A stretch of DNA of 64,000 bases from Isurus oxyrinchus (taxonomy: Eukaryota): the NCBI GenBank assembly GCA_026770705.1, contig JANJGN010000014.1, positions 128,526,001 through 128,590,000 on the forward strand, given 5' to 3'. Both the position numbers and the translations under genes were made by a program. Within the stretch, counting starts at the first letter, position 1. Every line of letters begins with the position of its first letter. Positions 1,156 to 61,825 of this stretch are shown here, in pieces. The notes beneath the pieces were generated by a model, which made no database searches, had not been told where the DNA came from, and was given only the letters and a program-made list of their open reading frames with translations.

Positions 1156-2876
1156 GGCAGAGGAACTGAATAGGTACTTTGCGTCAATCTTCACAGTGGA
1201 AGACACGAGTGACATCCCCAAAGTTCAAGAGAGTCGGGGGGGGGGGGGGGGCGGGCAGAGGTGAGTATGGTGGCCATTACCAAGGAAAAGGTGCTAGGAA
1301 AACTGAAAGGTCTGAAGGTGGATAAATCACCTGGACCAGATGGATTACACCCCAGAGTTCTGAAGGAGATAGCTGAAGAAATAGTGGAGGCGTTAGTGGT
1401 GATCTTTCAGGAATCACTGGAGTCAGGGAGGGTCCCAGAGGACAGGAAAATCGCTAATGTAACTCCCCTGATTAAGAAGGGAGTGAGGCAAAAGACGGGA
1501 AATTATAGGCCGATTAGCCTGACCTCGGTCGTTGGTAAGATTTTAGAGTCCATTATTAAGGATGAGATTTCAGAATACTTGGAAGTACATGGTAAAATCG
1601 GGCAAAGTCAGCATGGTTTCATCAAGGGGAGGTCATGCCTGACAAATCTGTTAGAATTCTTTGAGGAGGTAATGAGTAGGTTAGACAAAGGAGAGCCAAT
1701 GGATGTTATCTACTTGGACTTCCAGAAGGCCTTTGACAAGGTGCCGCACAGGAGGCTGCTCAGTAAGATAAGAGCCAATGGTGTTAGAGGCAAGGTACTA
1801 GCATGGATAGAAGGAGGCAGAGAGTGGGGATAAGGGGGTCCTTCTCAGGATGGCGTCTGGTGACTAGTGAAGTTCCGCAGGGGTCAGTGTTGGGACCACA
1901 ACTTTTCACTTTATATATTAATGATCTAGATGAAGGAACTGAGGGCATCCTGGCCAAGTTTGCAGATGATACCAAGATAGGTGGGACAGTTAGAATTGAG
2001 GAGGCGGGGAAGCTGCAGAAGGATTTGGACAGGTTAGGAGAATGGGTAAAGAAGTGGCAGATGGAATACAATGTGGGGAAGTGTGAGGTCATGCACTTTG
2101 GTAGGAAGAATAGAGGCATAGACTATTTTCTAAATGGGGAGAGAATTCAGAAATCTGGAGTGCAAAGGGACTTGGGAGTCCTAGTCCAGGATTCTATTAA
2201 GGTTAATTTGCAGGTTGTGTCGGTAGTTAGGAAGGTAAATGCAATGTTGGCATTTATTTCGAGAGGACTAGAATATAAAAGCAGGGATGTGCTGCTGAGG
2301 CTTTATAAGGCTCTGGTCAGACCACATTTAGAATATTGTGAGCAATTTTGGGCCCCGTATCTCAGGAAGGATGTGCTGGGCCTGGAGAGGGTCCAGAGGA
2401 GGTTCATGAGAATGATCCCAGGAATGAAAGGCTTAACATATGAGGAATGTTTGAGGACCCTGGGTCTATACTCGATGGAGTTTAGAAGGATGAGGGGGGA
2501 TCTGATTGAAACTTATAGAATACTGAAAGGCCTGGAAAGAGTGGATGTGGGGAAGATATTTCCATTAGTAGGAGAGACTAGGACCCGAGGGCACAGCCTC
2601 AGAGTAAAGGGAAGACCTTTTAGAACAGAGATGAGAAACTTCTTTAGCCAGAGAGTGGTGAATCTATGGAATTCATTGCCATAGAAGGCTGTGGAGGCCA
2701 GGTCATTGAGTGTATTTAAGACTGAGATAGATAGGTTCTTGATTGGTAAGGGGATCAAAGGTTACGGGGAGAAGGTGGGAGAATGGGGTTGAGAAACTTA
2801 TCAGCCATGATTGAATGGCGGAGCAGACTCCACCGGCCGGATGGCCTAATTTCTGCTCCTATGTCTTATGGTCTTA
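1152..2876 (+). mobile_element. 5'-truncated CR1 LINE (HER1-like), relatively young
   Basis: RT motifs KSPGPDG, NYRPISLTS, QHGF..GRSC.TNL, YLDFQKAFDKVPH, VPQGSVLGP.LF, KFADDTK; CR1 3' UTR ending atgtcttatggtcttat. Confidence 0.95.
1261..2684 (+). pseudogene. CR1 ORF2 reverse transcriptase, frameshifted near 1810
   Basis: ORFs 1261-1833 and 1803-2684 are consecutive halves of one RT; a short deletion after 'LAWIE' shifts the frame. Confidence 0.9.
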
Positions 2877-24163: not shown

Positions 24164-24500
24164 GGGGGAAGACAGTGGTGTAATGGTCATGTCACTGACC
24201 TCGTAATCCAGAGGGCCTAGCTAATGCTCTGGAGCCACAGGTTCAGATCCCACTGCAGCAGCTGGTGAAATTTAAATTCAAAAAATACAAAAAGGATCAA
24301 GAGTGAGAAGCCATGACAACCATCATTGACTGTTGTGTGGTTCACTAATGATCTGCTAGGGGAGGAAATCTGCCATCCTTCCCTGGTCTGGCCCAGATGT
24401 GACTCCAAACCAACGGGAATGTGGTTGACTCTTAACTGCCCTCTGAAATGGCCTAGCAAACCACTCAGCTCAAGGGCAATTTGGGATGGGCAACAAATGG
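24164..24500 (+). mobile_element. tRNA-headed SINE, internal-deletion derivative of the LINE at 50762-53912
   Basis: Head and body match the LINE 5' UTR up to ccactcag; joined near 24470 to the LINE 3' tail caagggcaatt.gggatgggcaa. Confidence 0.85.
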
Positions 24501-24509
24501 TGGAAAATA

Positions 24510-27699: not shown

Positions 27700-29910
27700 A
27701 AATTGATTCACGGGATGTGGGCTTCGCTGGCTAGGCCAGCATTTATTGCCCATCCCTAATTGCCCTTGAAGGTGGTGGTGAGCTACCGCCTTGAACTGCT
27801 GCAACCCATGTGGTGTAGGTACACCCATTGTGCTGTTAGGAAGGGAGTTCCAGGATTTTGACCCAGTGACAGTGAAGGAATGGATATATATTTCCAAGTC
27901 AGGATGGTGTGTGGCTTGGAGGGAAACTTGCAGGTGATGGTGTTCTCATGTGTCTGCTGCCCTTGTCCTTCTAGATGATAATGGTCATGGGTTTGGACGG
28001 TGCTGTCTAAGGAGCCTTGGTGAGTTCCTGCAGTGCATCTTATAGATGGTACACACTGTTGCTACTGTACATCAGTGGTGGAGGGAGTGAATGTTTGTGG
28101 ATGTGGTGCTAATCAATTGGGCTGCTTTGTCCTCAATGGTGTCAAGCTTCTTGAGTGTTATTGGAACTGTGCTCATCCAGGCAAGTGGGGAGTATTCCAT
28201 CACACTCTTGACTTGTGTGTTGCAGATTGTGGGCAGCATTTGGGGAGTCAGGAGATGAGCTACTCACCACAGAATTCCCAGCCTCTGACCTGCTTTTGTA
28301 GCCACAGTATCTATATGGCTAGTCCAGTTCAGTTTCTGGTTAATGGTAACCCCCCAGGATGTTGATAGTGGGGGATTCAGTGATGGTAATGTCATTGAAT
28401 GTCAAGGGGGCGATGGTTAGATTCTTTCTTGTTGGAGATGGTTATTGCCTGGCACTTGTGTGGTGTAAATGTTACTTGTCATTTGTTAGCCCAAGCCTGG
28501 ATATTGTCTAGGTCTTGCTGCATTTGAACACGGGCTGCTTCAGTTTCTGGAGAGTCGCGAATGGTGCTGAACATTGACATCTCCTTCCATCATAAGGTCA
28601 GAATTGGGGATGCTCGCTGATGATTGCTCATTGATGAAGCAGCTGAAGGTGGTTGAGCCGAGGACTCTACCCTGAGGAACTCCTGCAGTGATGTCCTGGA
28701 GCTGAGATGACTGACCTCCAACAACCATAGACATCTTCCTTTGTGTTAGATATGACTCCAACCAGAGGAGAATTCTCCCCCTCCACCACCCCCTCCCACC
28801 CCAATTCCCATTGACTTCAGTTTTGCTAGGGCTCCTTGATGCCACACTCGGTCAAATGCAGCCCTGATGTCAAGGGCAGTCACCCCCATCTCATCTCTAG
28901 AGTTCAGTTCTTTGTCCATGTTTGAGGCTAGTGATTGTGGTTGAGTACAATTATGCTGCTGCTGATGGCCCACAGCACCTCCTGGATGCCCAATGTTGAG
29001 TTGCTAGATCTGTTTGAAATCTACCCATTTAGCATGGTGGTAGTGCCACACAACATGATGGAGGGCATTCTCAATGTGAAGACGGGACTTTGTCTGCACA
29101 AGGACTGTGCGTTGGTCATTCCTATAGATACTGTCATGGACAGATGTATCTGTGGCAGGCAGGCTGGTGATTATGAGGCTAAGTATGCTTTTTCTTGTTG
29201 GTTCCCCCACCACCTGCTGCAGACCCAGTCTAGCAGCTATGCCATTTATGATTTGGCCAGCTTGGTCAGTAATGGTGATACTGAGCCACTCTTGGTGACG
29301 GACATCCGGAGTACATTTTGCATCCTGGCCACCCTTGGTGCATCCTCCAAGTGTTTTTCAACTTGAAGGAGTACTGATTCATCAGCTGAAGGGGTAGAGG
29401 GGTGGGTGGGGTGGGGGGGGGGGGGGGGTGGTAGGGTGGCAGACGCAGCACATGGTAATCAGCAGGAAGTTTCTATGCCCATGTTTGACCTGTGGCCATG
29501 AGACTTCATGGGGTCTGAAGTCAATATTGAGGATTCCTAGGATAGCTCCCTCCTGACTGTATACCACTGCCACCACCTCTGCTGGGTCTGTCCTGCTGGT
29601 GAGATAGGACATGCCCAGGGATCGTGATGGTGGTGTCTGGGACATTATCTGTAAGGTATAATTCCATGCATCTGACTATGTCAGGCTGATGCTTGACTGG
29701 TCTGTGAGACAGCTCCCCCAATTTTGGCACAAGCCTCAGATGTTGGTAAGGAGGGCTTTACAGGGTCGGCAGGGCCTTTGCCCTTTTTTGGTGCCAAGGT
29801 CGATCCAGGGTGGTCAGTCTAGTTTCATTCCTTTGAGACATTTTAGTTGTTTGATACAACTACGTGGCTTGCTAGGCTATTTCAGAGGACGTTTAAGAGT
29901 CAACCATATT
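27700..29910 (-). mobile_element. ORF1-less CR1/L2-group LINE, copy 2 (internal deletion, head lost)
   Basis: APE start (KLGELSHR.VK.QPDIV), EPTR..ILSLI.T, ALDIRAAFDRVWHQG, AGVPQG.VLG; 29850-29910 continues into the SINE-body sequence. Confidence 0.9.
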
Positions 29911-30104
29911 CAATCCAATTGCCAATTAGATAACTTTCTGAAGAGAGTAAAGATTGAAGAGCAAAGGATTTGCACTCATATATAGCACCTTTCATGACTT
30001 TGGCTGTAATGCGCTTTAGGGCATCCTATGGTTTACTTTTAACATGTAGCCACTGTCATAAATGTAGGAAATGGGACAGCCAATTTGCACAAAGTAAGAT
30101 TTTT

Positions 30105-31232
30105 TTCATTCATTTATGGGATGTGGCCGTCATTTACAAGCCCAGCGTTTATTTCCTGTCCTTAATTGCCCTAAAGAAGGTGGTGGTGAGTTGCCTTTTT
30201 TGAACTGCTGCAGTCTATGTGGTGAAGGCACTCCCATAGAGTTAAGAGGGATTTCCAGGATTTTGACCCAATGGCAAGGAACAGTTATGTATTTGTGAGA
30301 CTTGCAGGAGGTGGTATTCCCATGTGCCTGCTGCCCTTGTTCTTCCAGATGATAGAGGCTGTGTGTTTTGGAGGAACAGGCAAAGAGGCCTTGTGAGTTG
30401 CAATGCATCTTGTAGATAGTGCATACTGCAGCCGCAGTGCACTGGTGTGGAGGGAGTGAATGATTAAAATGTTGCATGGGGTGCCAATCAAGTGCGCTGC
30501 TTTGTCTTGGATGGTGACAAGTTTCTTGAGTTTTTCTGGAACTGCATTCATTCAGGGAGGTGGAGAGTGTTCCATCCTAACTTGTGCCTTATTGATGATG
30601 GAAAGCCTTTGGGGAGTCAGGAAGTGAGTCAGTCACTCAGGGAATAGGCCAGCATTTATTGCCCAGAGTCACATCTGAGAGGGGACAGCAGATAAAGGAC
30701 ATCAGTGAACCAGATGAGTTTTTACAACAATTTACAAAGGTCTAACGATGACCATGAAACTTTTAATTCCATCATCTGCAGCGAGATTTGAACCCGGGTT
30801 CCCAGACCATTAATCTGGGTCTCTGGATGACTAGTCCAGTGACAATATCACTATGCCATCACCTCCCCTGTAAATGCCCAGCCTCTGACCTGCTCTGTTA
30901 GCCACAGTTTTTATGTGGCTGGTTCAGTTAAGTTTCTAGTCAATGATGTGGCAACCCAATGATGTTAATGCCTTTGAATCTCAATGGAAGGTAGTTTAGA
31001 CTCTTTCGTGTTGGAGATGCCAGTTAGCAGCCTAAAGCTGAATGTTGTCCAGGTGTTGCTGTGTGCGGGCATGGACTGCCTCAGTATCTGAGGAATTGCA
31101 AATGAAATTAAACACTGGGCATCGGCAAACATTCCCACTTCTGACCTTATGACGTAGGGACTGTTGTTGATAAAGTAGCTGAAGGTGGCTGGACCAAAGA
31201 CTCTACTTTGCGGAACTCCTGCAGCAATGTTC
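30105..31232 (-). mobile_element. 3' part of the same LINE family with a nested tRNA-headed SINE (30647-30868, minus)
   Basis: AGVPQS.V.GP.TFSYFIN..IRSEVGMFAD; nested copy carries the A/B-box head. Confidence 0.8.
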
Positions 31233-31234
31233 CA

Positions 31235-31490
31235 CAAGCAACAATCTGATAATGACCAGATAATCTGTTTCAAATATTGATCAAGAAACTCTAGTTGAGC
31301 TCCCCTGCTTTACTTTAGTAGAGCACCACGAGATCTTTTACATATATCTGAGAGGGGAGATGGGGCCCCGGTTTAATGTGTGATGAGAAAGGTCACACCT
31401 TCGGGATTTTGAGCTTAAAATGTCTTGCGTGGGTCTTTAGCCCACAATCTTCTGACCTAGAGGCAAAAGTGCTACCACTGAGCTACAACA
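31235..31490 (-). mobile_element. Deu-domain SINE fragment
   Basis: ggggccccggtttaatgt..gaaagg; head aaagtgctaccactgagcta on the plus strand. Confidence 0.65.
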
Positions 31491-40857: not shown

Positions 40858-43800
40858 GACTTTCCTCCTCATCATAAGGACAGAAGTGGGATGTTTGCCA
40901 ATGGTTGCATAATGTTCTGTGCCATTCGTGACTTCAGATACTGAAGCAATCTGTATCTGCATACATTCAATCCTTAAATAATAGCCATTCATAATTCATA
41001 AATTCATCATTGTGCCTTTTAATGAAGTTCTCCAATATATCTTGGCAACTCACGCCTCATACCTTTGTAGACTGTTTAGATTTAGATTAATTTAGATTTG
41101 TTTAAATTTGGATCTAGATATAGATTGGGCAAACCAAATTATTAACAACACTATGGCGGATGAATTCCTGGAGCGTGTATGTGATGGTTTTTTAGACCAA
41201 TATGTCGCGTAACCAGGTTGGGGATAGGCTATCCCAGAATTGATATTGTGCAGTGAGAAGGGGTTAATTAATCTTCCGTGGAGTCCTTTAAGGGACAGTA
41301 ACCATAACAAGGTAGAATTCTTAATTAAGCTGGAGAGTGAAGTAGTCAGGTCCAAAACTAGGATTCTAAATCTAAACAAAGGAAGCTATGAAGGAATGAG
41401 GTGTGAGTTGGCTAAGATAGATTGGGGAACTTCATTAAAAGGCGTGACAGTGAATAGACAATGACTAATATTTAAGGGACAAATGTATTCATTGCAACAG
41501 TTATACATTCCTTTCTGACACAAAAACACAACAGGCAAAGTGGCCCAGCCATGGCTAACAAAAAAAAATTAAGGATGGTATTAGATCAAAAGAGGAGTCA
41601 TATGAAGTTGTTAGAAAAAGTAACAAGCCTGAGGATTGGGAGCAGTTTAGAATTTGGCAAAGGAGGACCAAGAGATTGATTAAGAGGAGAACAATAGAGT
41701 ATGAGAGTAAACTTGCAAGGAACATAAGAGTGGACTGTAAAAGCTTCTATGAGGATAAATAAAGGAAAAGATTAGTGAAAACAAATGTAGGTCCCTTACA
41801 GCCCGAAACAGGAGAATTTATAGTAGAGAACAAGGAAATAACGGAGAAATTAAACAACAATTTTAGTTCTGTCTTCACAGAGGAAGACACAAATAACTTC
41901 CCAGAAATGCTATGGAACCAAGGGTTGAGCAAGAAGGAGGAATTGAAGGCAATAAAAAAGTAGTGTTGGAGAAATTAACAGGGCTGAAAGCTGATAAATC
42001 CTTAGGGCCTGATAATCTATAGCCCAGGGTACTAAAGGAGATGGCCATGGAAATAGTGGATGTGTCAGTTGTCATCTTCCCAATTCTGTAGATTCTGGAA
42101 CAGTCCCAGCAGATTAGAGGGTGGTAAATGTAACCCCACTATTTAAAAAGGAGGAAAGAAGAAAACAGTGAATTAAAATAACATCAGTAGGAGGGAAAAT
42201 GCTAGAGTCTATTACAAAGTATGTGATAACAGGACACTTAGAAAAGATCAATGGGATTAGACAATGTCAGCATGGATTTATGAAAGGGAAATCATGTTTG
42301 ACAAACCTCTTGGAGGTTTTTGAGGACGTAATTAGCAGAATAGATAAGAGAGAACCAGTGGATGTTGTGTATTTGGATTTTCAGAAAGCTTTTGATAATG
42401 TCCCACGTAAGAGGTTAGTGTGTAAAATTAAAGCACACAGGATTGAGGGTAATATATTGGCATGGATTGAGGATTGGTTAGCAGGCAGGAAACAGTAGGA
42501 ATGAATGAGTCTTTTTCAGAATGGCAGGCAGTGACTAGTGGGGTACCACAGGGATCAGTGCTTGGGCCCCAGCTATTCACAATATATATCAATGATTTAG
42601 GTGAGGGCTCCAAGTGTAATCTTTTCAAGTTTGCTGACGACATGAAACTTGGTGGGAATGTGAGTGGTAAGGGGGGTGTTTAAAGGCTTCAAGCCTCCAA
42701 GTTGAGTGAGTGGGTAAATACATAGCAGATGTGGCATAATGTGGCATAATGTGGATAAGTGTGAAGTTATCCACTTTGGTAAGTAAAACAGGATGGCTGA
42801 GTATTATTTAAATGGTGATAGATGGGGAAATATTGATATACAAAGGGACCTAGGTACACCATCACTGAAAACAAGCATGTAGGTGCAGCAAGCAGTTAAG
42901 AAGGCAAATAGTATGTTGGCCTTCATTGTAAGAATATTGAGTACAGGAACAAGGCTGTCTTACTGTCGCTTTATAGGGCCTTGGTGAGAGCACACCTGGA
43001 GTATTGTATGCAGTTTTGATGATCTCACCTAAAAAAAGATATACTTGCCATAGAGGGAGTGCAGCGGAGGTTCACAGGCTGATTCCTGGGATGGCACAAT
43101 TCTCATATGAGGAGAGATTGAGTTGACTGGACCTGTATTCACTGAAGTTTAGAAGAATGAGGGGATCTCATTGAAATGTATAAAATTCTAACTAGGATGG
43201 ACAGACTGGATGCAGGGATGATGTTTCCTGTGGCTGGAGAGTCTAGAACAAGAGGTCACAATCTCAGGATACGGGGTAGGCCATTTATGACTGAGATCAG
43301 GAGAAACCTCTTCACTCAGAGGTGGTGAACTGTGGAATTCTCTACCACAGAAGGCTGTGGAGGTCAAGTCACTGAATATGTTGAAGAAGGAAATAGATTT
43401 CTAGACTCTAAAGGCATCAAGGGGTATGGGGATAGAGGTGGATTATGACATTGAGGTAGAATATCAGCCATGATCATATTGATTGGTGGAGCAGGCTCAC
43501 AGGACTGAATGACCTACTCCTCCTATATTCTATGTTTCTATGTATGCAGCAAGGTCTGGACAACATTCAGTTTTGGGCTAATAAGTGGCAAGTAAACTTC
43601 ACACCACACAAGTGCCAGGCAATGACCATGTCCAACAAGAGAGAATCTAGTCTTCTCCCCTTGACATTCAACAGCATTACCATCACTGAATCCCCACTAT
43701 CAACATTCTGGGAGTTGCCATTGACTTGAAACTGAATTGGACTAGCCATATAAATACCGCGGCTACAAGAGCAGGTCACAATCTGGGAATTCTGTGGAGA

Positions 43801-44280
43801 GTAACACATCTCCTGACTCCCCAAAGCCTGTCCACAATCTACAAGGCAGGAGTGTGACGGCACTGTCCATTTGCTTAAAACTGCAACTTCAAACAGCACT
43901 CAAGAAGCTCAACACCATCCAGAACAAACAAAGCGCCCACTTGATTAGCATCCCTTTGACCACCTTAAACACTCACTCCATCCGTCACTGATGCACAGTG
44001 GCAGCAGTGTGTACCATCTACAAGTTGCATTGTAGCAACTCACCAAGCCTAATTCCAACAGCATCTTCCAAACCCACGACCTCCACATATCATCCTGACT
44101 TGGAACTATATTAGCTGTTCCTCACTGTTGTTGGGTCAAAATCTTGGAACTCCTTTCCTAACAGCACTGTGGGTGTACCTGATACAAGAGGGATGCTCAC
44201 CACCACCTTTTCAAGGGCAGTTAGGGATGACAATAAGTACTGGCCTAGTCAGCGATGCCCACATCCCATGAATGGATACA
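40858..44280 (+). mobile_element. ORF1-less LINE 3' half (40858-40962 and 43538-44280) split by a CR1 insertion
   Basis: catcataaggacagaagtgggatgtttgc..gatactgaagca resumes as atgcagcaaggtctggacaacattcag and runs to the tail gcccacatcccatgaatg. Confidence 0.8.
40970..43537 (+). mobile_element. Degraded CR1 LINE (APE C-terminus, RT, 3' UTR) with an inverted 5' segment
   Basis: DS.HNKVEF, QHGFMKGKSCLTNL, YLDFQKAFD.VP, SGVPQGSVLGP, KFADD; many stops; tail ctatattctatgttt. Confidence 0.92.
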
Positions 44281-49546: not shown

Positions 49547-50729
49547 TGTTACAGGCAGGACAGACTGTTCAAACTGCACTGATTTCCTCTCACCACTTTC
49601 CCATAAGCAGAAGGTGTTTTGAATTAGTTTTTAAAGATTAAACAGTGATGTGTTTCCCAAACCCCTTGGATTTTGTGATGGAGTTTTACAACTAATCCAC
49701 AGCAACCTTGAGTTAGGATTAACTCAGAAGGTTAGTTTGTTTTCACATGTTCAAAACCCATGATAAGTAGTGTCCACAACATCCCTCTCCATACATTCAC
49801 ACAATAAAGGGAGGGATAAATAAAAGGAGTTTTACAATGGAAGAAAAATGAATATTGGTTCACATGAGTTCCAGGGTCCAAAGTCTGAATCCAATGGGGA
49901 ATTCTTTCAAGTGAGCTTTCGTGTTCAGCTGGCTGAATACTGACATTGTAAGATTTGCTTTTCCATTTGGGCTGATGTCACAAGGTGAGGTAGGCATGTG
50001 GAGACTGAGTCAGCTCTGTAGGCAATGGTACAAGATCTTCCAGCAGGGTCAGGTTCGATGGGTAGGTTGTTCTGCCTGGAGGAGCCTGCTTCTTTATCTC
50101 TTACCAGTGGGATGTTAATCAGCAGATTGGCTGTGAAAATCAAAGATGTAATATTAAACTGACCAGAAAGCCAGAGGCTTGGGCCATGTGACCTACCTTC
50201 TGTGCAATGACTTCAAAGGATTTTTATCCATCATCTGAAATTGGCTTTGGTTTCAGGACTGATAATGTCTCAGTCATTAGTTGTTGAAAGGGGTTCCATT
50301 TATGCTGAGGGCATGGTGTTTGGGAAGCCATTGTCTCCACAGACCCGCTGACTCCACTAACAAGATTGGTTTATCAAATGCAAATGACATCCCTGTAGTT
50401 CTCTTTGCAATTGGTCAAAACAGTCCCAGGTTTGATGTGAGTCTGTTAGTCATTCTCTAGGCACGTGTGACATTCCAGAAACTGAGGAAAGAATTATTTG
50501 TCCTCGTAACTCCTGGGGATAGCTCCCAGTGAGAGGATCATCTCTGTGATCAGGTGACTTGTAGCAGCCATCTTAATTTTCTTGAGTGCAAAAAGACCAG
50601 TTCTAAAAATAGGCAGCAATAAGGATAAAGTTTTTTTTTTGAAAATATATAGTGGTAGGTTTCTTTCTGTGTTGTAGGAACCAACAAATTACTTCTCCAC
50701 AGTCTTTTGAAAAGCTATTGGGTATAACA
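49547..50729 (-). mobile_element. Possible old solo LTR
   Basis: TGTTA...TAACA termini and layout similar to the other solo LTRs; no target duplication seen. Confidence 0.35.
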
Positions 50730-50761
50730 TCCAGCACTTTTTGGTGAGATATTCTATGTTT

Positions 50762-53700
50762 TCTTTCATTCATTCACAGGATGTATGCTTCAATGGCTGA
50801 GCCAGCATTTATTGCCCATCCCTAATTACCCTTGAGAAGCTGGTAGTGAGCTGCCTTCTTGAACTTCTGCAGTCCATGTGGACTGCATAGTTACACCAAT
50901 AGTGCTGTTAGGAAGGGAGTTCCAGGATTTTTACCCAGCGACAGTGAAGGAATGGCGATATATTTCCACATCAGGATGGTGAGGGACTTGGAGGGGATGT
51001 TCCCTATCTGCTGCCTTTGTCCTTCTAGGTGGTAATGGTCATAGGTTAGGAAGGTTCTGTCTAAGGAACCTTGGTGAATTCCTGCAGTGCATCTTGTAGA
51101 TGGTACACACTGCAGCTACTGTGCATCGGTGGTAGAGGGAGTAAATGTTTGTGGATGTGGTGCCAATCAAGCGGACTGCTTTGTCCTGGATGATGTCCAG
51201 CTTCAATGTTGTAAGAGCTGCACATACAGGCAATTGGAGAGTATTCCATCACAATCTTGACTTGTGGCTTGTGGATGGTGGACAGGCTTTGGGGAGTCAG
51301 GAGGCAAGTTATTCATCGCACGTTTCCTAGCATCTGACCTGCTCTTATAGCCACAGTATTTATATGGCTAGTCCAGTTCAGTTTCTAGTCAATGGTAACC
51401 CCCAGGATGTTGCTAGTGGGGAATTCAGTGATGGTAATGCTGTTGAACATCAAGGAGCGATGGTTGGATTCTCCCTTGTTGGAGATGGTCATTGCCTAAC
51501 ACTTGTGTGGCATGAATGTTACCTTCCACTTGTCAGCCCAAGCCTGGATATTGTCCAGGTCTTGCTGCATTTGGACATGGACTGCTTCAGTATCTGAGGA
51601 GTCACGAATAGTGCTATTGTGCAATCATCAGCGAACATCCCCACTTCTGACCTTATGATGGAAGGAAGGTCATTGACGAAGCAGCTGAAGACCTTTGGGC
51701 CTAGGACACTACCCTGAGGAACTCCTGCAGTGATGTCCTGGAGCTGAGATGACTGATCTCCAACAACCACAGCCATCTTCCTTTGTGCTAGGTATGACTC
51801 CAACCAGCGGAGAGTTTTCCCCCTGATTCCATTTTTGCTAGGGCTCCTTGATGCCACACTCCGTCAAATGCTGCCTTGATGTCAAGGACAGTCACTTTTA
51901 CCTTACCTCAGGAGTTCAATTCTTTTGTCCATGTTTGAACCAAGGCTGTAACGAGGTCAGGAATTGAATGGCCCTTGCAGAACCCAAACTGGGCTTCAGT
52001 GAGCTGGCTATTGCTAAGCAAGTGCTGCTTAATAGCACTGTTGATGACATTTTCCATTATTTTACTGATGATCGAGTGTAGACTGATGGAGCAGTAATTG
52101 GCTGGGTTGCATTTGCCTGGCTTTTTGTGTACAGGGCAATTTTCCACATAGCTGTGCAGATGCCAGTGTTGTAGCTATACTGGAACAGCTTGGCTAGGGG
52201 TGCAGCAAGCTCTGGAGCACAAGTCTTCCGTACTATTGCCAGGGCCCAGAGCCTTTGCGGTATCCAGTGCCTTTAGCTGTTTCTTGATATCACATGGAGT
52301 GAATTGAATTGGCTGAAAACTGGCATCTATGATGATGGGGACCTCTGGAAGAGTCCGAGATGGATCATCCACTCATCACTTCTGGCTGAAGATTGTTGCA
52401 AATGCTTCAGCCTTATCTTTTTCACAGCTGTGCTGGGCTGCTGCATCATTGAAGATGGGCATACTTGTGGAGCCTCCTCCTCCAGTGAGTTGTTTAATTG
52501 TCCATCATCATTCACGACTGGATGTGGCAGGACTGCAGAGCTTAGATCTGATCCGTTGGTTGTGGGATCGCCCAGCTCTGCCTATCACTTGCTGCTTGGC
52601 ATGCAAGTGGTTCTCTTTTATTGCTCCACCAGGTTGACACCTCATTTTTCTGTATGCGTGGTGCTGCTCCTGGCATGCCCTCCTGCACTCTTCATTGAAC
52701 CAAGGTTGATCCCCTGTCTTGATGGTAATGGTAGAGTGGGGGATATGCCAGGCCATGAGGTTACAGTTTGTGTTGGAGTATAATTCTGCTGCTGCTGATG
52801 GCCCACAGTGCCTCATGGATGCCCAGTCCTGAGTTGCTAGATCTGTTCGAAATCTATCTCATTTAGCACAGTGGTAGTGCCACACAACACGATGGCGGGT
52901 ATCCTCAATGTGAAGGCTGGGCTTCATCTCCACAATGACTGTGCAGTGGTCACTCCTACCGATACTGTCATAGGCAGATACATCTGCGGCAGGCAGGTTG
53001 GTGAGGATGAAGTCAAGTATGTTTTTCCCTCTTGTTGGTTCCCTCACCACCTGCCGCAGACCCAGTCTAGCAGCTATATAATCTAGGACTCAGCCTGTAG
53101 TAGTGCTACAGAGCCACTCTTGGTGGTGGACGTGGGTGTCTGACTTCATTCTGGGCCCTCTTGACACCCTCTGTGCTTCCTCAAGTGATATTCAACATGG
53201 AGGAGCACTGATTCATCAGCTGAGGGAGGGCAGTAGTTGGTAATCAGCAGGAGGTTTCCTTGCCTATGTTTGACCTGATGCCATGAGACTTCATGGGGTC
53301 TCATGTCAATGTTGAGGACTCACAGGGCAATTCCCTTCCGACTGTATACCACTGCCATCACATCGGCTGGGCCTGTCCTGCAGGTGGAACAGGCCATACC
53401 CAGGGATGATGACGGTGGTGTCTGGGACTTTATCTGTAAGGTATGATTCTGTAAGGATGACTATGTCAGGCTGTTGCTTGACTAGTCTGTAAGACAGTTC
53501 TCCCAAGCTTGGCACTAGCCCCAGATGTTGGCAAGGAGGACTTTGCAGGGTCAACAGGGCTGTGATTGCAGTTGTTGTTTCTGGTGCCTAGGTCAATGCA
53601 GGGTGGTCCATCCAGTTTCATTCCTTTTTTGTGTCCTTGGAGTGGTTTGTTACAACTGAGTAGCATGCTAGGCCATTTCAGAGTCGACCACATTGCTGCT

Positions 53701-53912
53701 GTGGGGGTCTGGAGTCACATGTAGGCCAGACCAGGTAAGGACGACAGATTTCCTTCGCTAAAGGACATTAGTGAGTGAACCAGATTTACAACAATCGACT
53801 TTTAATTCCAGGTTTTTTACTGAATTCAAATTCCACCATCTGCCATGGTGGGATTCGAACCCACGTCTCTGGATTACTAGTCCAATGACAATACCATTAT
53901 GCCATCGCCTTC
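50762..53912 (-). mobile_element. Near full-length ORF1-less APE-RT LINE (CR1/L2 group) with tRNA-derived 5' head
   Basis: Head 53842-53912; ATG at 53621; APE (QPDIVILTESYL, EPTRG.NILD.ILTN, SDH); RT (AQFGF..GHS, DI.AAFD, VPQGSVLGP, MFADD); stop near 50822; (TGAA)n tail; disrupted by indels. Confidence 0.92.
53842..53912 (-). promoter_or_regulatory. tRNA-Thr(AGT)-like Pol III internal promoter at the LINE 5' end
   Basis: A-box TGGCATAATGG (53894-53904), anticodon arm TGGA-CTAGTAA-TCCA, T arm GTGGG-TTCGAAT-CCCAC with a consensus B-box (53851-53861). Confidence 0.8.
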
Positions 53913-54119
53913 CTCTTTTTCAAAAAAGAAATACTCCTAATTTTTTCCCTTTTGTGTTTTTTAGTGAAGATTTCAAAAATTACACTCTGGCACACTGGCC
54001 ATGGGAATTTTTTTTCCCTGATTTGCTTCATTGGACCTCATATAGTTTTGATTGCCTTGCAACCTTTTTTCTAATTCAAAGTGTCTGTATAACTAAAGCC
54101 AGCACCATAAGGCATCACC

Positions 54120-54320
54120 TTAAGTGATTTTTTTTTTTTGCACTCTCCATGGTCTTGACATCTTTCCTAACGTAAGGCACCCAAACCTGCCCACAATACT
54201 CTAATGTTGACCTGACCAATGATTTGTATATTTTTATCAATGAAGATACTGAAGCTTTTGTTTCTTTCTTATAAGAATGTAATGAAATAGGTTGAACGCC
54301 CTTCGTATCTTTTAAATTTG
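54120..54320 (-). mobile_element. Old CR1 RT C-terminal fragment
   Basis: ORF 54115-54336: IYKSLVRSTLEYCGQVWVPYVRKDV. Confidence 0.75.
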
Positions 54321-54684
54321 AACATACTCCGGCCAATCAATTTGCCTTCTCCGACATGTCGATCTGTTTGTTCCATGTCTTTACGTATAAACATCAACAT
54401 TATAAATGTATTACTGTTTGTTCTGAACCAACTCGTGTTGAACAACAGCACTCAAAATCACTGATTAATTTTCCAACTGCAGAGAAGATGCTGCATTAAA
54501 TCTGTGTGTATTTGTGTATGTTCTATATGGCTTTGATATAATTTCCATAATATTATCGTGGTTTGAATTAAGAGTGTAATCTGCCTGATATCAACGCTGT
54601 TGCATTTAGCACCACCTTTTTGTCTTTCATGTCATTACATTTTCTTTCACCAATGCAAGAAATTGTGTAGTGCCACCATAAGTG

Positions 54685-61019: not shown

Positions 61020-61825
61020 AACTCATTCATTCATTCATAGAATGTGGGTGTCACTGGCAAGGCCAACATTTATTTCCCATCCCTAATTGCTCTTGAGAAG
61101 GTGGTAATGAACCACCATTCTTAGCTGTTTTGATATCACTGAGTGGATTGCTAATTTATTTCAGAGGGTGGTTAAGAGGCAAACACATGACTGTTGGCCT
61201 GGTGTTACATATGGGGCAGAGCAGATAAAGGTCACACATTTAAAAGGGGTGGTGATGGCGGAGTGGTAATGTCACTGGGCTAATAATCCAGTCGCCCAAG
61301 CTAATGCTCTGGGGACACTGGTTCAAATCCCACCATAGAATTCAAATTTAATTAATAAAATCTGGAGTTGAAAGTGAGTCTTATTAATTGAGACCTTGAA
61401 ACTGTCATCAATTGTCGTAAAAATCATCTGGTTCTCTTAATGCCCTTTAGGGAAGGAACTCTGCTGTCCTTGTCTGGTCTGGCCCACATGGGACTCCAGC
61501 CCCATAGTCATGTGGTTTGTGGTTGACTCTGAAACGGCCTAGCAAGCCATTTAGTTCAAGGGCGTCTAGGAATGGGCAGTCAGTTTTGGTCTTGCCAGTG
61601 ATGCTGACATCCCATGAATAAATAAATACATTTCCTTCCCTGGAAGGGATTCCTGAGCCAGTTAAGCTTTTGCAATAATACAGTAGTTTGGTGGCCACCA
61701 CTGATAATGCTGTTTTAAAAAATTAATTGGCTGAATTTAAAATTCCCAGCTGCTATGGTGGGATTTGATCTCATCTCCAGATTACTATCCTGCAATTACT
61801 AGTCCAGTAACATGACCATTGTGTT
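61020..61825. mobile_element. Three tRNA-headed LINE-derived SINEs (minus 61020-61240, plus 61246-61628, minus 61630-61825)
   Basis: Central copy is complete: A-box tggcggagtgg, B-box ggttcaaatcc, body, junction near 61556, tail cccatgaataaataaa. Confidence 0.85.

Follow-up and report, generated by a model that had tools for sequence, protein, structure and literature searches.

A probable shark family of L2-like LINEs with a tRNA-derived head ahead of a single APE-RT reading frame

We analysed a stretch of 64,000 nucleotides (nt) from the genome of Isurus oxyrinchus (NCBI GenBank assembly GCA_026770705.1, contig JANJGN010000014.1, positions 128,526,001 to 128,590,000 of the forward strand; hereafter 'the window', with positions counted from its first letter) and focused on a long interspersed element (LINE) carried on its minus strand. 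This element, copy A, spans 53909-50762 (-), a length of 3148 nt, and comprises in order a transfer RNA (tRNA)-derived head, a leader, an ATG, a region of putative APE-type endonuclease remnants, a linker, a region of reverse transcriptase (RT) remnants and a 3' tail. Copy A is most likely a dead, full-length member (~3.15 kb) of a shark family of L2-like LINEs that bear such a head and a single open reading frame (ORF) for APE and RT. Its features, given 5' to 3' along the minus strand together with the evidence for each, are as follows.

53840-53909, minus strand: tRNA-derived head with A-box-like and B-box motifs, without an extra hairpin of ~21 nt (ARAGORN, Rfam, fold, comparison with heads of short interspersed elements, or SINEs)
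53655-53839, minus strand: leader ('body') in common with the SINE, holding upstream ATGs (blastn to SINE copies at 24342-24442 and 61408-61556; alignment)
53622-53654, minus strand: final, LINE-specific part of the leader, not found in the SINE, whose copies diverge here and pass straight into the tail (alignment)
53619-53621, minus strand: likely start codon of the single ORF (MKLDG...); database fragments P0004, P0005, P0013 and P0027 begin at the equivalent methionine
52862-53587, minus strand: putative APE (endonuclease) remnants in three frame-shifted pieces (Exo_endo_phos E=0.0014 on the relative P0003, below cut-off)
52511-52858, minus strand: basic linker from APE to RT, a candidate counterpart of the L2 tail-binding region by analogy with ZfL2, as described in the accessible part of PMC4176376
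51388-52174, minus strand: reverse transcriptase remnants (RVT_1 on two pieces)
50839-51387, minus strand: remnants of the C-terminal region and 3' untranslated region (UTR); the C-terminal piece is 74% identical to copy B, a second member of the family
50762-50838, minus strand: 3' tail in common with the SINE and with 5'-truncated copies, with TGAA-type repeats at its end (self-comparison, alignment)

The sequence-only reading that had drawn attention to this locus placed a tRNA-Thr(AGT)-like unit at the start of the minus-strand element, and two independent calls agree with it: ARAGORN reports 53840-53909 (-) as the sole tRNA-like gene of the 64-kilobase (kb) window and types it as tRNA-Thr(AGT)-like, and the Rfam tRNA model RF00005 matches 53841-53908 with 37.3 bits (gathering score 29). 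An A-box-like motif, TGGCATAATGG, was read directly from the sequence at 53904-53894, as was a B box, GGTTCGAATCC, at 53861-53851, each identified by its consensus motif. The head of copy A differs in one respect from the other heads examined in the window, all three of which contain the extra ~21-nt hairpin that it lacks; its neat class-I tRNA appearance is therefore partly a deletion artefact. Four runs were also compared, as contigs and from the best 32 of 654,460 pieces, and run X16 has at 53867 a loose end that likewise displays the extra hairpin. An Rfam scan of the leader found neither a ribozyme nor any other Rfam family.

Downstream of the head, the predicted start codon was located at 53621-53619, 288 nt past the start of the head and in agreement with the earlier estimate of ~290 nt; fragments from the whale shark Rhincodon typus use it as their start. 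The earlier claim that no room is left for an ORF1 also holds, in that only 218 nt separate the head from the ATG and this interval is a SINE-like leader. The accompanying claim of one continuous APE-RT frame had to be abandoned: copy A is broken by at least five frame changes and at least six in-frame stops, its longest stop-free stretch is 116 codons, and its ATG is out of frame with its APE piece. Two of its pieces nevertheless match RVT_1 (E=1.6e-08, 35 bits against a cut-off of 29.6, and E=5.4e-05), which is sufficient to assign an RT domain. The APE match is weak, consisting of Exo_endo_phos on the whale-shark relative P0003 at E=0.0014 and 18.9 bits against a cut-off of 24.5; no Pfam APE domain was matched by copy A's own pieces, and a PDB sequence search for APE returned no match. 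Copy A thus shares with tRNA-derived SINEs a 5' head with internal A and B boxes, but departs from their short (<~600 bp) and non-coding form in its 3-kb length and its APE and RT remnants.

The 3' tail was examined for secondary structure. That of copy B, which is better preserved, folds as a hairpin of -23.6 kcal/mol (z=-2.3; 5 of 200 shuffles were equally good), and the consensus fold for seven tails, at -2.4 kcal/mol and with zero compensatory pairs, is weak. An AATAAA hexamer occurs at 50795-50800 (-), ~30-40 nt ahead of the 3' repeats, in LINE and SINE tails alike; it may be part of a hairpin loop rather than a polyadenylation signal. We considered whether the leader at 53690-53655 might have been copied from the 3' UTR of the LINE itself and rejected the idea, as two of 16 leader/tail pairings gave P~0.03 and the others exceeded 0.09.

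Several further elements of the window are related to copy A and bear on its interpretation.

24176-24503, plus strand: SINE copy made up of a head with the extra hairpin, the leader and then directly the tail (self-comparison, alignment)
61256-61578, plus strand: second SINE copy of the same build (self-comparison, alignment)
30645-30872, minus strand: shortened SINE, its head with the extra hairpin, nested in the same orientation in a 5'-truncated LINE copy, copy C (30100-31306)
27702-29911, minus strand: copy B, of the same family, internally deleted and 5'-truncated within the shared leader, keeping the leader-ATG-APE junction (76-80% identity to copy A)
43544-44277, plus strand: copy D, a 5'-truncated LINE with no SINE head upstream

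The local SINE consists of the head and leader (the equivalent of 53909-53655) immediately followed by the 3'-terminal ~77 nt of the LINE (50838-50762). The LINE and the SINE are therefore the long and the short form of one retroposon lineage. A second SINE form, with leader-tail joints that link 50826-50834 to 53705 and 13-40 leader-like letters between them, is present in contigs of all four runs. Two histories fit the window, a SINE that arose as a deletion product of the headed LINE and a LINE that captured the 5' part of a SINE through a switch of template; under either one a headed LINE spread. Pieces of SINE head, body and tail also lie in both orientations within less than 800 nt at 61023-61110 (-), 61139-61224, 61256-61578 (+) and 61731-61820 (-). 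In runs X15 and X16, which come from other species and which we guess to be RNA, T5-T7 stand just upstream of the conserved core, where they would constitute a terminator for RNA polymerase III (Pol III) inside the SINE body.

We examined the recurrence of the junction between leader and ORF, both within the window and in protein databases. Copy B, which lies in flanks different from those of copy A, retains the ATG and, ahead of it, 33 nt of LINE-specific sequence preceded by ~50-65 nt of the leader common to the SINE, and is cut at the equivalent of ~53697, where unrelated DNA and the tail of another copy precede it. The sequence-only reading had offered this second copy as showing the same linkage of 5' UTR to ORF; the leader-ORF junction is indeed kept there, but the copy does not reach the head. 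With the APE N-terminus as query, 1.84 billion representative proteins yielded 23 matches at E<=0.001, of which 9-13 are short fragments of the copy A family and none is a full-length LINE protein, and a word-based search with P0002 yielded eight further fragments. All of the database fragments named here are gene models of Rhincodon typus (EukProt). P0004, P0005, P0013 and P0027 run from the methionine equivalent to 53621 into APE; P0001 and P0026 are contiguous from the equivalent of 53676, through the SINE-shared leader and into the ORF; and in the models P0002 and P0006 residues from the leader (equivalents of 53771-53730 and 53758-53652) are joined to APE. No alternative leader was seen among the Rhincodon typus fragments. 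A protein search with the leader-to-ORF reading (53714-53469) returned no candidate, and a metagenome scan for the APE-coding stretch of the LINE gave 0 matches. Residues equal to the APE N-terminus of this LINE also occur in C-terminal or internal positions in P0008/P0024 (XP_048453027.1, RIMS1-like, Rhincodon typus), P0009 and P0014, which are likely exonised or mis-annotated LINE pieces.

The upstream boundary of the family was examined in two DNA runs. Their contigs pile up on head, leader, LINE and tail and leave the bin 53919-54000 nearly empty, from which we conclude that the repeat family ends at the first base of the head. No contig bridging head and ORF occurs among the best 32 of 654,460 pieces, a result that neither supports nor excludes such bridging. 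The continuous order of head, leader, gene and tail in copy A, the repetition of the junction in copy B and in four whale-shark fragments, and the ending of the family at the 5' edge of the head together bear out the earlier view that this is no chance SINE insertion. Judged from its sequence, a family of headed, single-ORF, L2-like LINEs that shares both of its ends with its own SINE is likely to be real.

Comparison with characterized elements indicates which of these features are new. Zebrafish ZfL2-2, as described in the accessible part of its report (PMC4176376), is a single-ORF element of ~4.2 kb that is able to retrotranspose in HeLa cells and whose endonuclease-RT linker binds the 3' stem-loop. 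The sequence-only reading had held that CR1/L2 LINEs usually carry an ORF1; this mobile, single-ORF example makes that statement too strong, and the missing ORF1 of copy A is for the same reason not new (PMC4176376, same part). The unusual part of copy A is its head only. The ORF1-less 'stringent' L2 LINEs (ZfL2-2 and eel UnaL2), so far as the accessible descriptions go, resemble it in having one endonuclease-RT ORF, a basic linker, and a 3' end in common with a partner SINE, made up of short tandem repeats and a hairpin that is putative in the copy A family. ZfL2-2 differs in its repeat-bearing 5' UTR, and the accessible text reports no tRNA-derived head for it (PMC4176376); copy A, at ~3.15 kb, is the shorter element and has its initial ~255 nt in common with a SINE.

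On the SINE side, the available portion of PMC5499810 describes SacSINE1/LmeSINE1 as tRNA-headed Deu-SINEs of shark, chimaera and coelacanth, present in Rhincodon typus, with a tail homologous to L2-2_CM. By that description they are similar to the local SINE in their tRNA-derived head with A and B boxes, conserved body and L2-homologous tail; the homology of SacSINE1 to a LINE is described there for the tail only, whereas the LINE of copy A bears the head and body as well. The type of tail and this link between SacSINE1 and L2-2_CM (PMC5499810, in the portion available) are the grounds on which we provisionally call the family of copy A L2-like. In a 2018 survey of Repbase by Kojima (PMC5786205, of which part was accessible), 5' parts of LINEs were found in SINEs only from RTE and Vingi; the survey also proposes template switching as the way in which bipartite LINEs gain their heads, and describes SINEs as incapable of encoding protein. 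Bipartite SINEs such as Bov-tA, WALLSI and CoeSINE4 are likewise built of a head, a LINE 5' segment and a LINE 3' tail, but in the accessible text of that survey the head is not part of the LINE, unlike copy A, an L2-like LINE that bears the head itself (PMC5786205). No published LINE with a tRNA-derived head, from sharks or elsewhere, was found in a limited literature search that did not cover Repbase or Dfam.

By the textbook division, LINEs are coding and transcribed by RNA polymerase II (Pol II), and SINEs are non-coding, transcribed by Pol III and parasitic on LINE tails. A LINE family that itself begins with a SINE head makes this division less sharp, and offers an origin of SINEs in one step, by internal deletion. 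It also extends the occurrence of LINE 5' parts in SINEs from RTE and Vingi, to which the accessible part of the survey confines it (PMC5786205), to an L2-like LINE. Should the head drive the coding RNA, that RNA would be a natural messenger RNA (mRNA) made by Pol III, with a bearing on cap-less translation and on silencing by the host; it would be the first such mRNA of an animal mobile element, and the LINE would provide a direct route to a SINE.

The content of T-runs was examined with this possibility in view. The sense strand of copy A contains one TTTT run where 5.8 are expected from composition, and that of copy B (2186 nt) contains none where 3.2 are expected; TTT words in the two copies together number 13 against ~53 expected, a depletion of ~4-fold, and A-runs are at expectation. 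The single T4 of copy A, at position 52318, is a minority state at which most contigs read another letter. Three LINE fragments of the window that belong to other families, with 11 T-runs against 8.3 expected, are not depleted. The T-run controls include RT remnants at 1465-1982 (+) and 42474-42653 (+), which have 37-40% protein identity to the copy A family.

Transcription by Pol III is the most economical reading, since the head stands at the exact 5' end and oligo-T is avoided. On these sequence grounds we regard it as possible, at a little under an even chance, that the coding RNA is transcribed by Pol III from the head. A Pol III-driven, headed, L2-like LINE is accordingly the best overall explanation that we have for the locus, and one that we hold tentatively, at not quite even confidence. 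In such a scheme TFIIIC and TFIIIB would engage the internal A and B boxes, which would be carried along in each new copy; Pol III would read through a sense strand that is nearly free of oligo-T and stop at the first T-run of the flank; the uncapped RNA would be translated, inefficiently or in a cap-independent manner, from the ATG at 53621; and the protein would bind the 3' hairpin and repeat tail, either of its own RNA or of SINE RNA, and copy that RNA into the genome. The most complete form of the proposal, an autonomous protein-coding retrotransposon that is transcribed by Pol III from a tRNA-derived promoter, has a sense strand purged of oligo-T and gives rise to SINEs by internal deletion, is more doubtful.

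A number of observations weigh against this explanation. The join of head to ORF is seen directly in one copy only, with copy B and all database fragments ending before the head, and those fragments come from the gene models of one species, two of them spliced models. No target-site duplication was detected around the interval from head to tail, flank alignments scoring at the level of shuffled sequence and of randomly paired genomic segments (P=0.53, 0.55 and 0.44). The depletion of T-runs also depends on the null: a dinucleotide shuffle expects 2.5 +/- 1.4 TTTT runs in copy A (one seen), and a second-order Markov null expects 0.9 in copies A and B together (again one seen), so that there is no depletion beyond that of TTT. 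As the second-order null removes the TTTT signal, the pattern is one of general avoidance of oligo-T or TT, possibly resulting from codon bias. The older copies C and D display little or no depletion of oligo-T, and a loose-end consensus at 53774 in runs X15 and X16 carries T5-T7 on the sense strand of leader variants. Nine upstream ATGs lie within the 288 nt between the start of the head and the ATG of the ORF, an arrangement hostile to scanning. Finally, we know of no natural 3-kb Pol III transcript and of no natural mRNA made by Pol III.

The strongest of the rival explanations accepts the headed family as real and assigns its coding RNA to Pol II, which would start at a promoter within the leader or read through from a host gene, so that the head would not be the promoter of that RNA. 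The head might then serve as a TFIIIC-bound boundary that keeps new copies open, as a processing site of the RNase P type that would set the 5' end, a role played in other LINEs by HDV-like ribozymes, or as baggage that enables SINE derivatives to form by deletion. The evidence of architecture is equally compatible with this explanation, which would also provide the cap that translation needs, and the upstream ATGs argue against plain scanning from the head; the TTTT depletion is, moreover, not significant under the second-order null. The accessible part of PMC5786205 discusses ribozymes at LINE 5' ends and notes that signals for Pol II may be in conflict with those for Pol III. The leader, on the other hand, contains no ribozyme or known RNA family in Rfam, and among the LINE fragments of the window the avoidance of oligo-T is specific to the copy A family. 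Cleavage of the RNase Z type behind the tRNA-like fold would separate head and ORF, but copy A retains its head. We consider transcription by Pol II unlikely, while taking it seriously.

A second rival dispenses with a headed master element. Head-bearing copies would be chimeras, formed once or a few times, either when the RT had copied a LINE RNA made by Pol II as far as its 5' end and then switched template to a SINE RNA just upstream of the SINE tail, or by recombination between SINE and LINE, and then duplicated. Template switching is an accepted origin of SINEs and of chimeric retrocopies in the available portions of two reports (PMC5786205, PMC5499810), and the single directly observed head-to-ORF copy suits this explanation as well. 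It does not readily account for a junction at the identical position in copies A and B, which are 76-80% identical and differently flanked, and in the four whale-shark fragments; and a chimera that had gone on to amplify as a family would be our best explanation rather than a rival to it. We judge an origin of the head-bearing copies as such chimeras improbable. Chimeric retrocopies of the U6/L1 kind are comparable in that the sequence of a small Pol III RNA is fused upstream of a LINE in one insertion. Their joints fall at variable points of truncated L1s, and they are not known to found families. The junction of the copy A family is by contrast fixed and recurrent, being the same in copies A and B and in P0001, P0002, P0006 and P0026, and a variable chimera of that type was rejected.

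Chance neighbourhood, in which a SINE or its 5' part would lie beside, or be cut by, an unrelated 5'-truncated LINE, might be entertained since such SINEs are very abundant and nesting does occur in the window (the SINE inside copy C); with no SINE tail separating leader from ORF, and with the identical junction in copy B and four database fragments, we rejected it as very improbable. Least credible of all is a target-specific LINE that inserts at one site within the SINE and is merely flanked by SINE parts: LINEs of the Tx1 type that target small-RNA genes exist, but the 5'-truncated copies B, C and D all share the tail and none of the three has the SINE 5' part or leader upstream, and this explanation was likewise rejected.

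The surroundings of copy A were also inspected. No other copy of the flanking older LINE that spans the insertion site occurs in the 64-kb window, and a protein search with the piece of ORF from that LINE returned no match. A duplicate of ~24 nt that had been picked out by eye inside the flanking LINE was discarded as unsupported, the flank alignments being at chance level. The flanks themselves, 54115-54336 (-) and 50560-50760 (-), resemble in their motifs the remains of a C-terminal coding region from another, older CR1/L2-like LINE, and copy A seems to sit inside that element.

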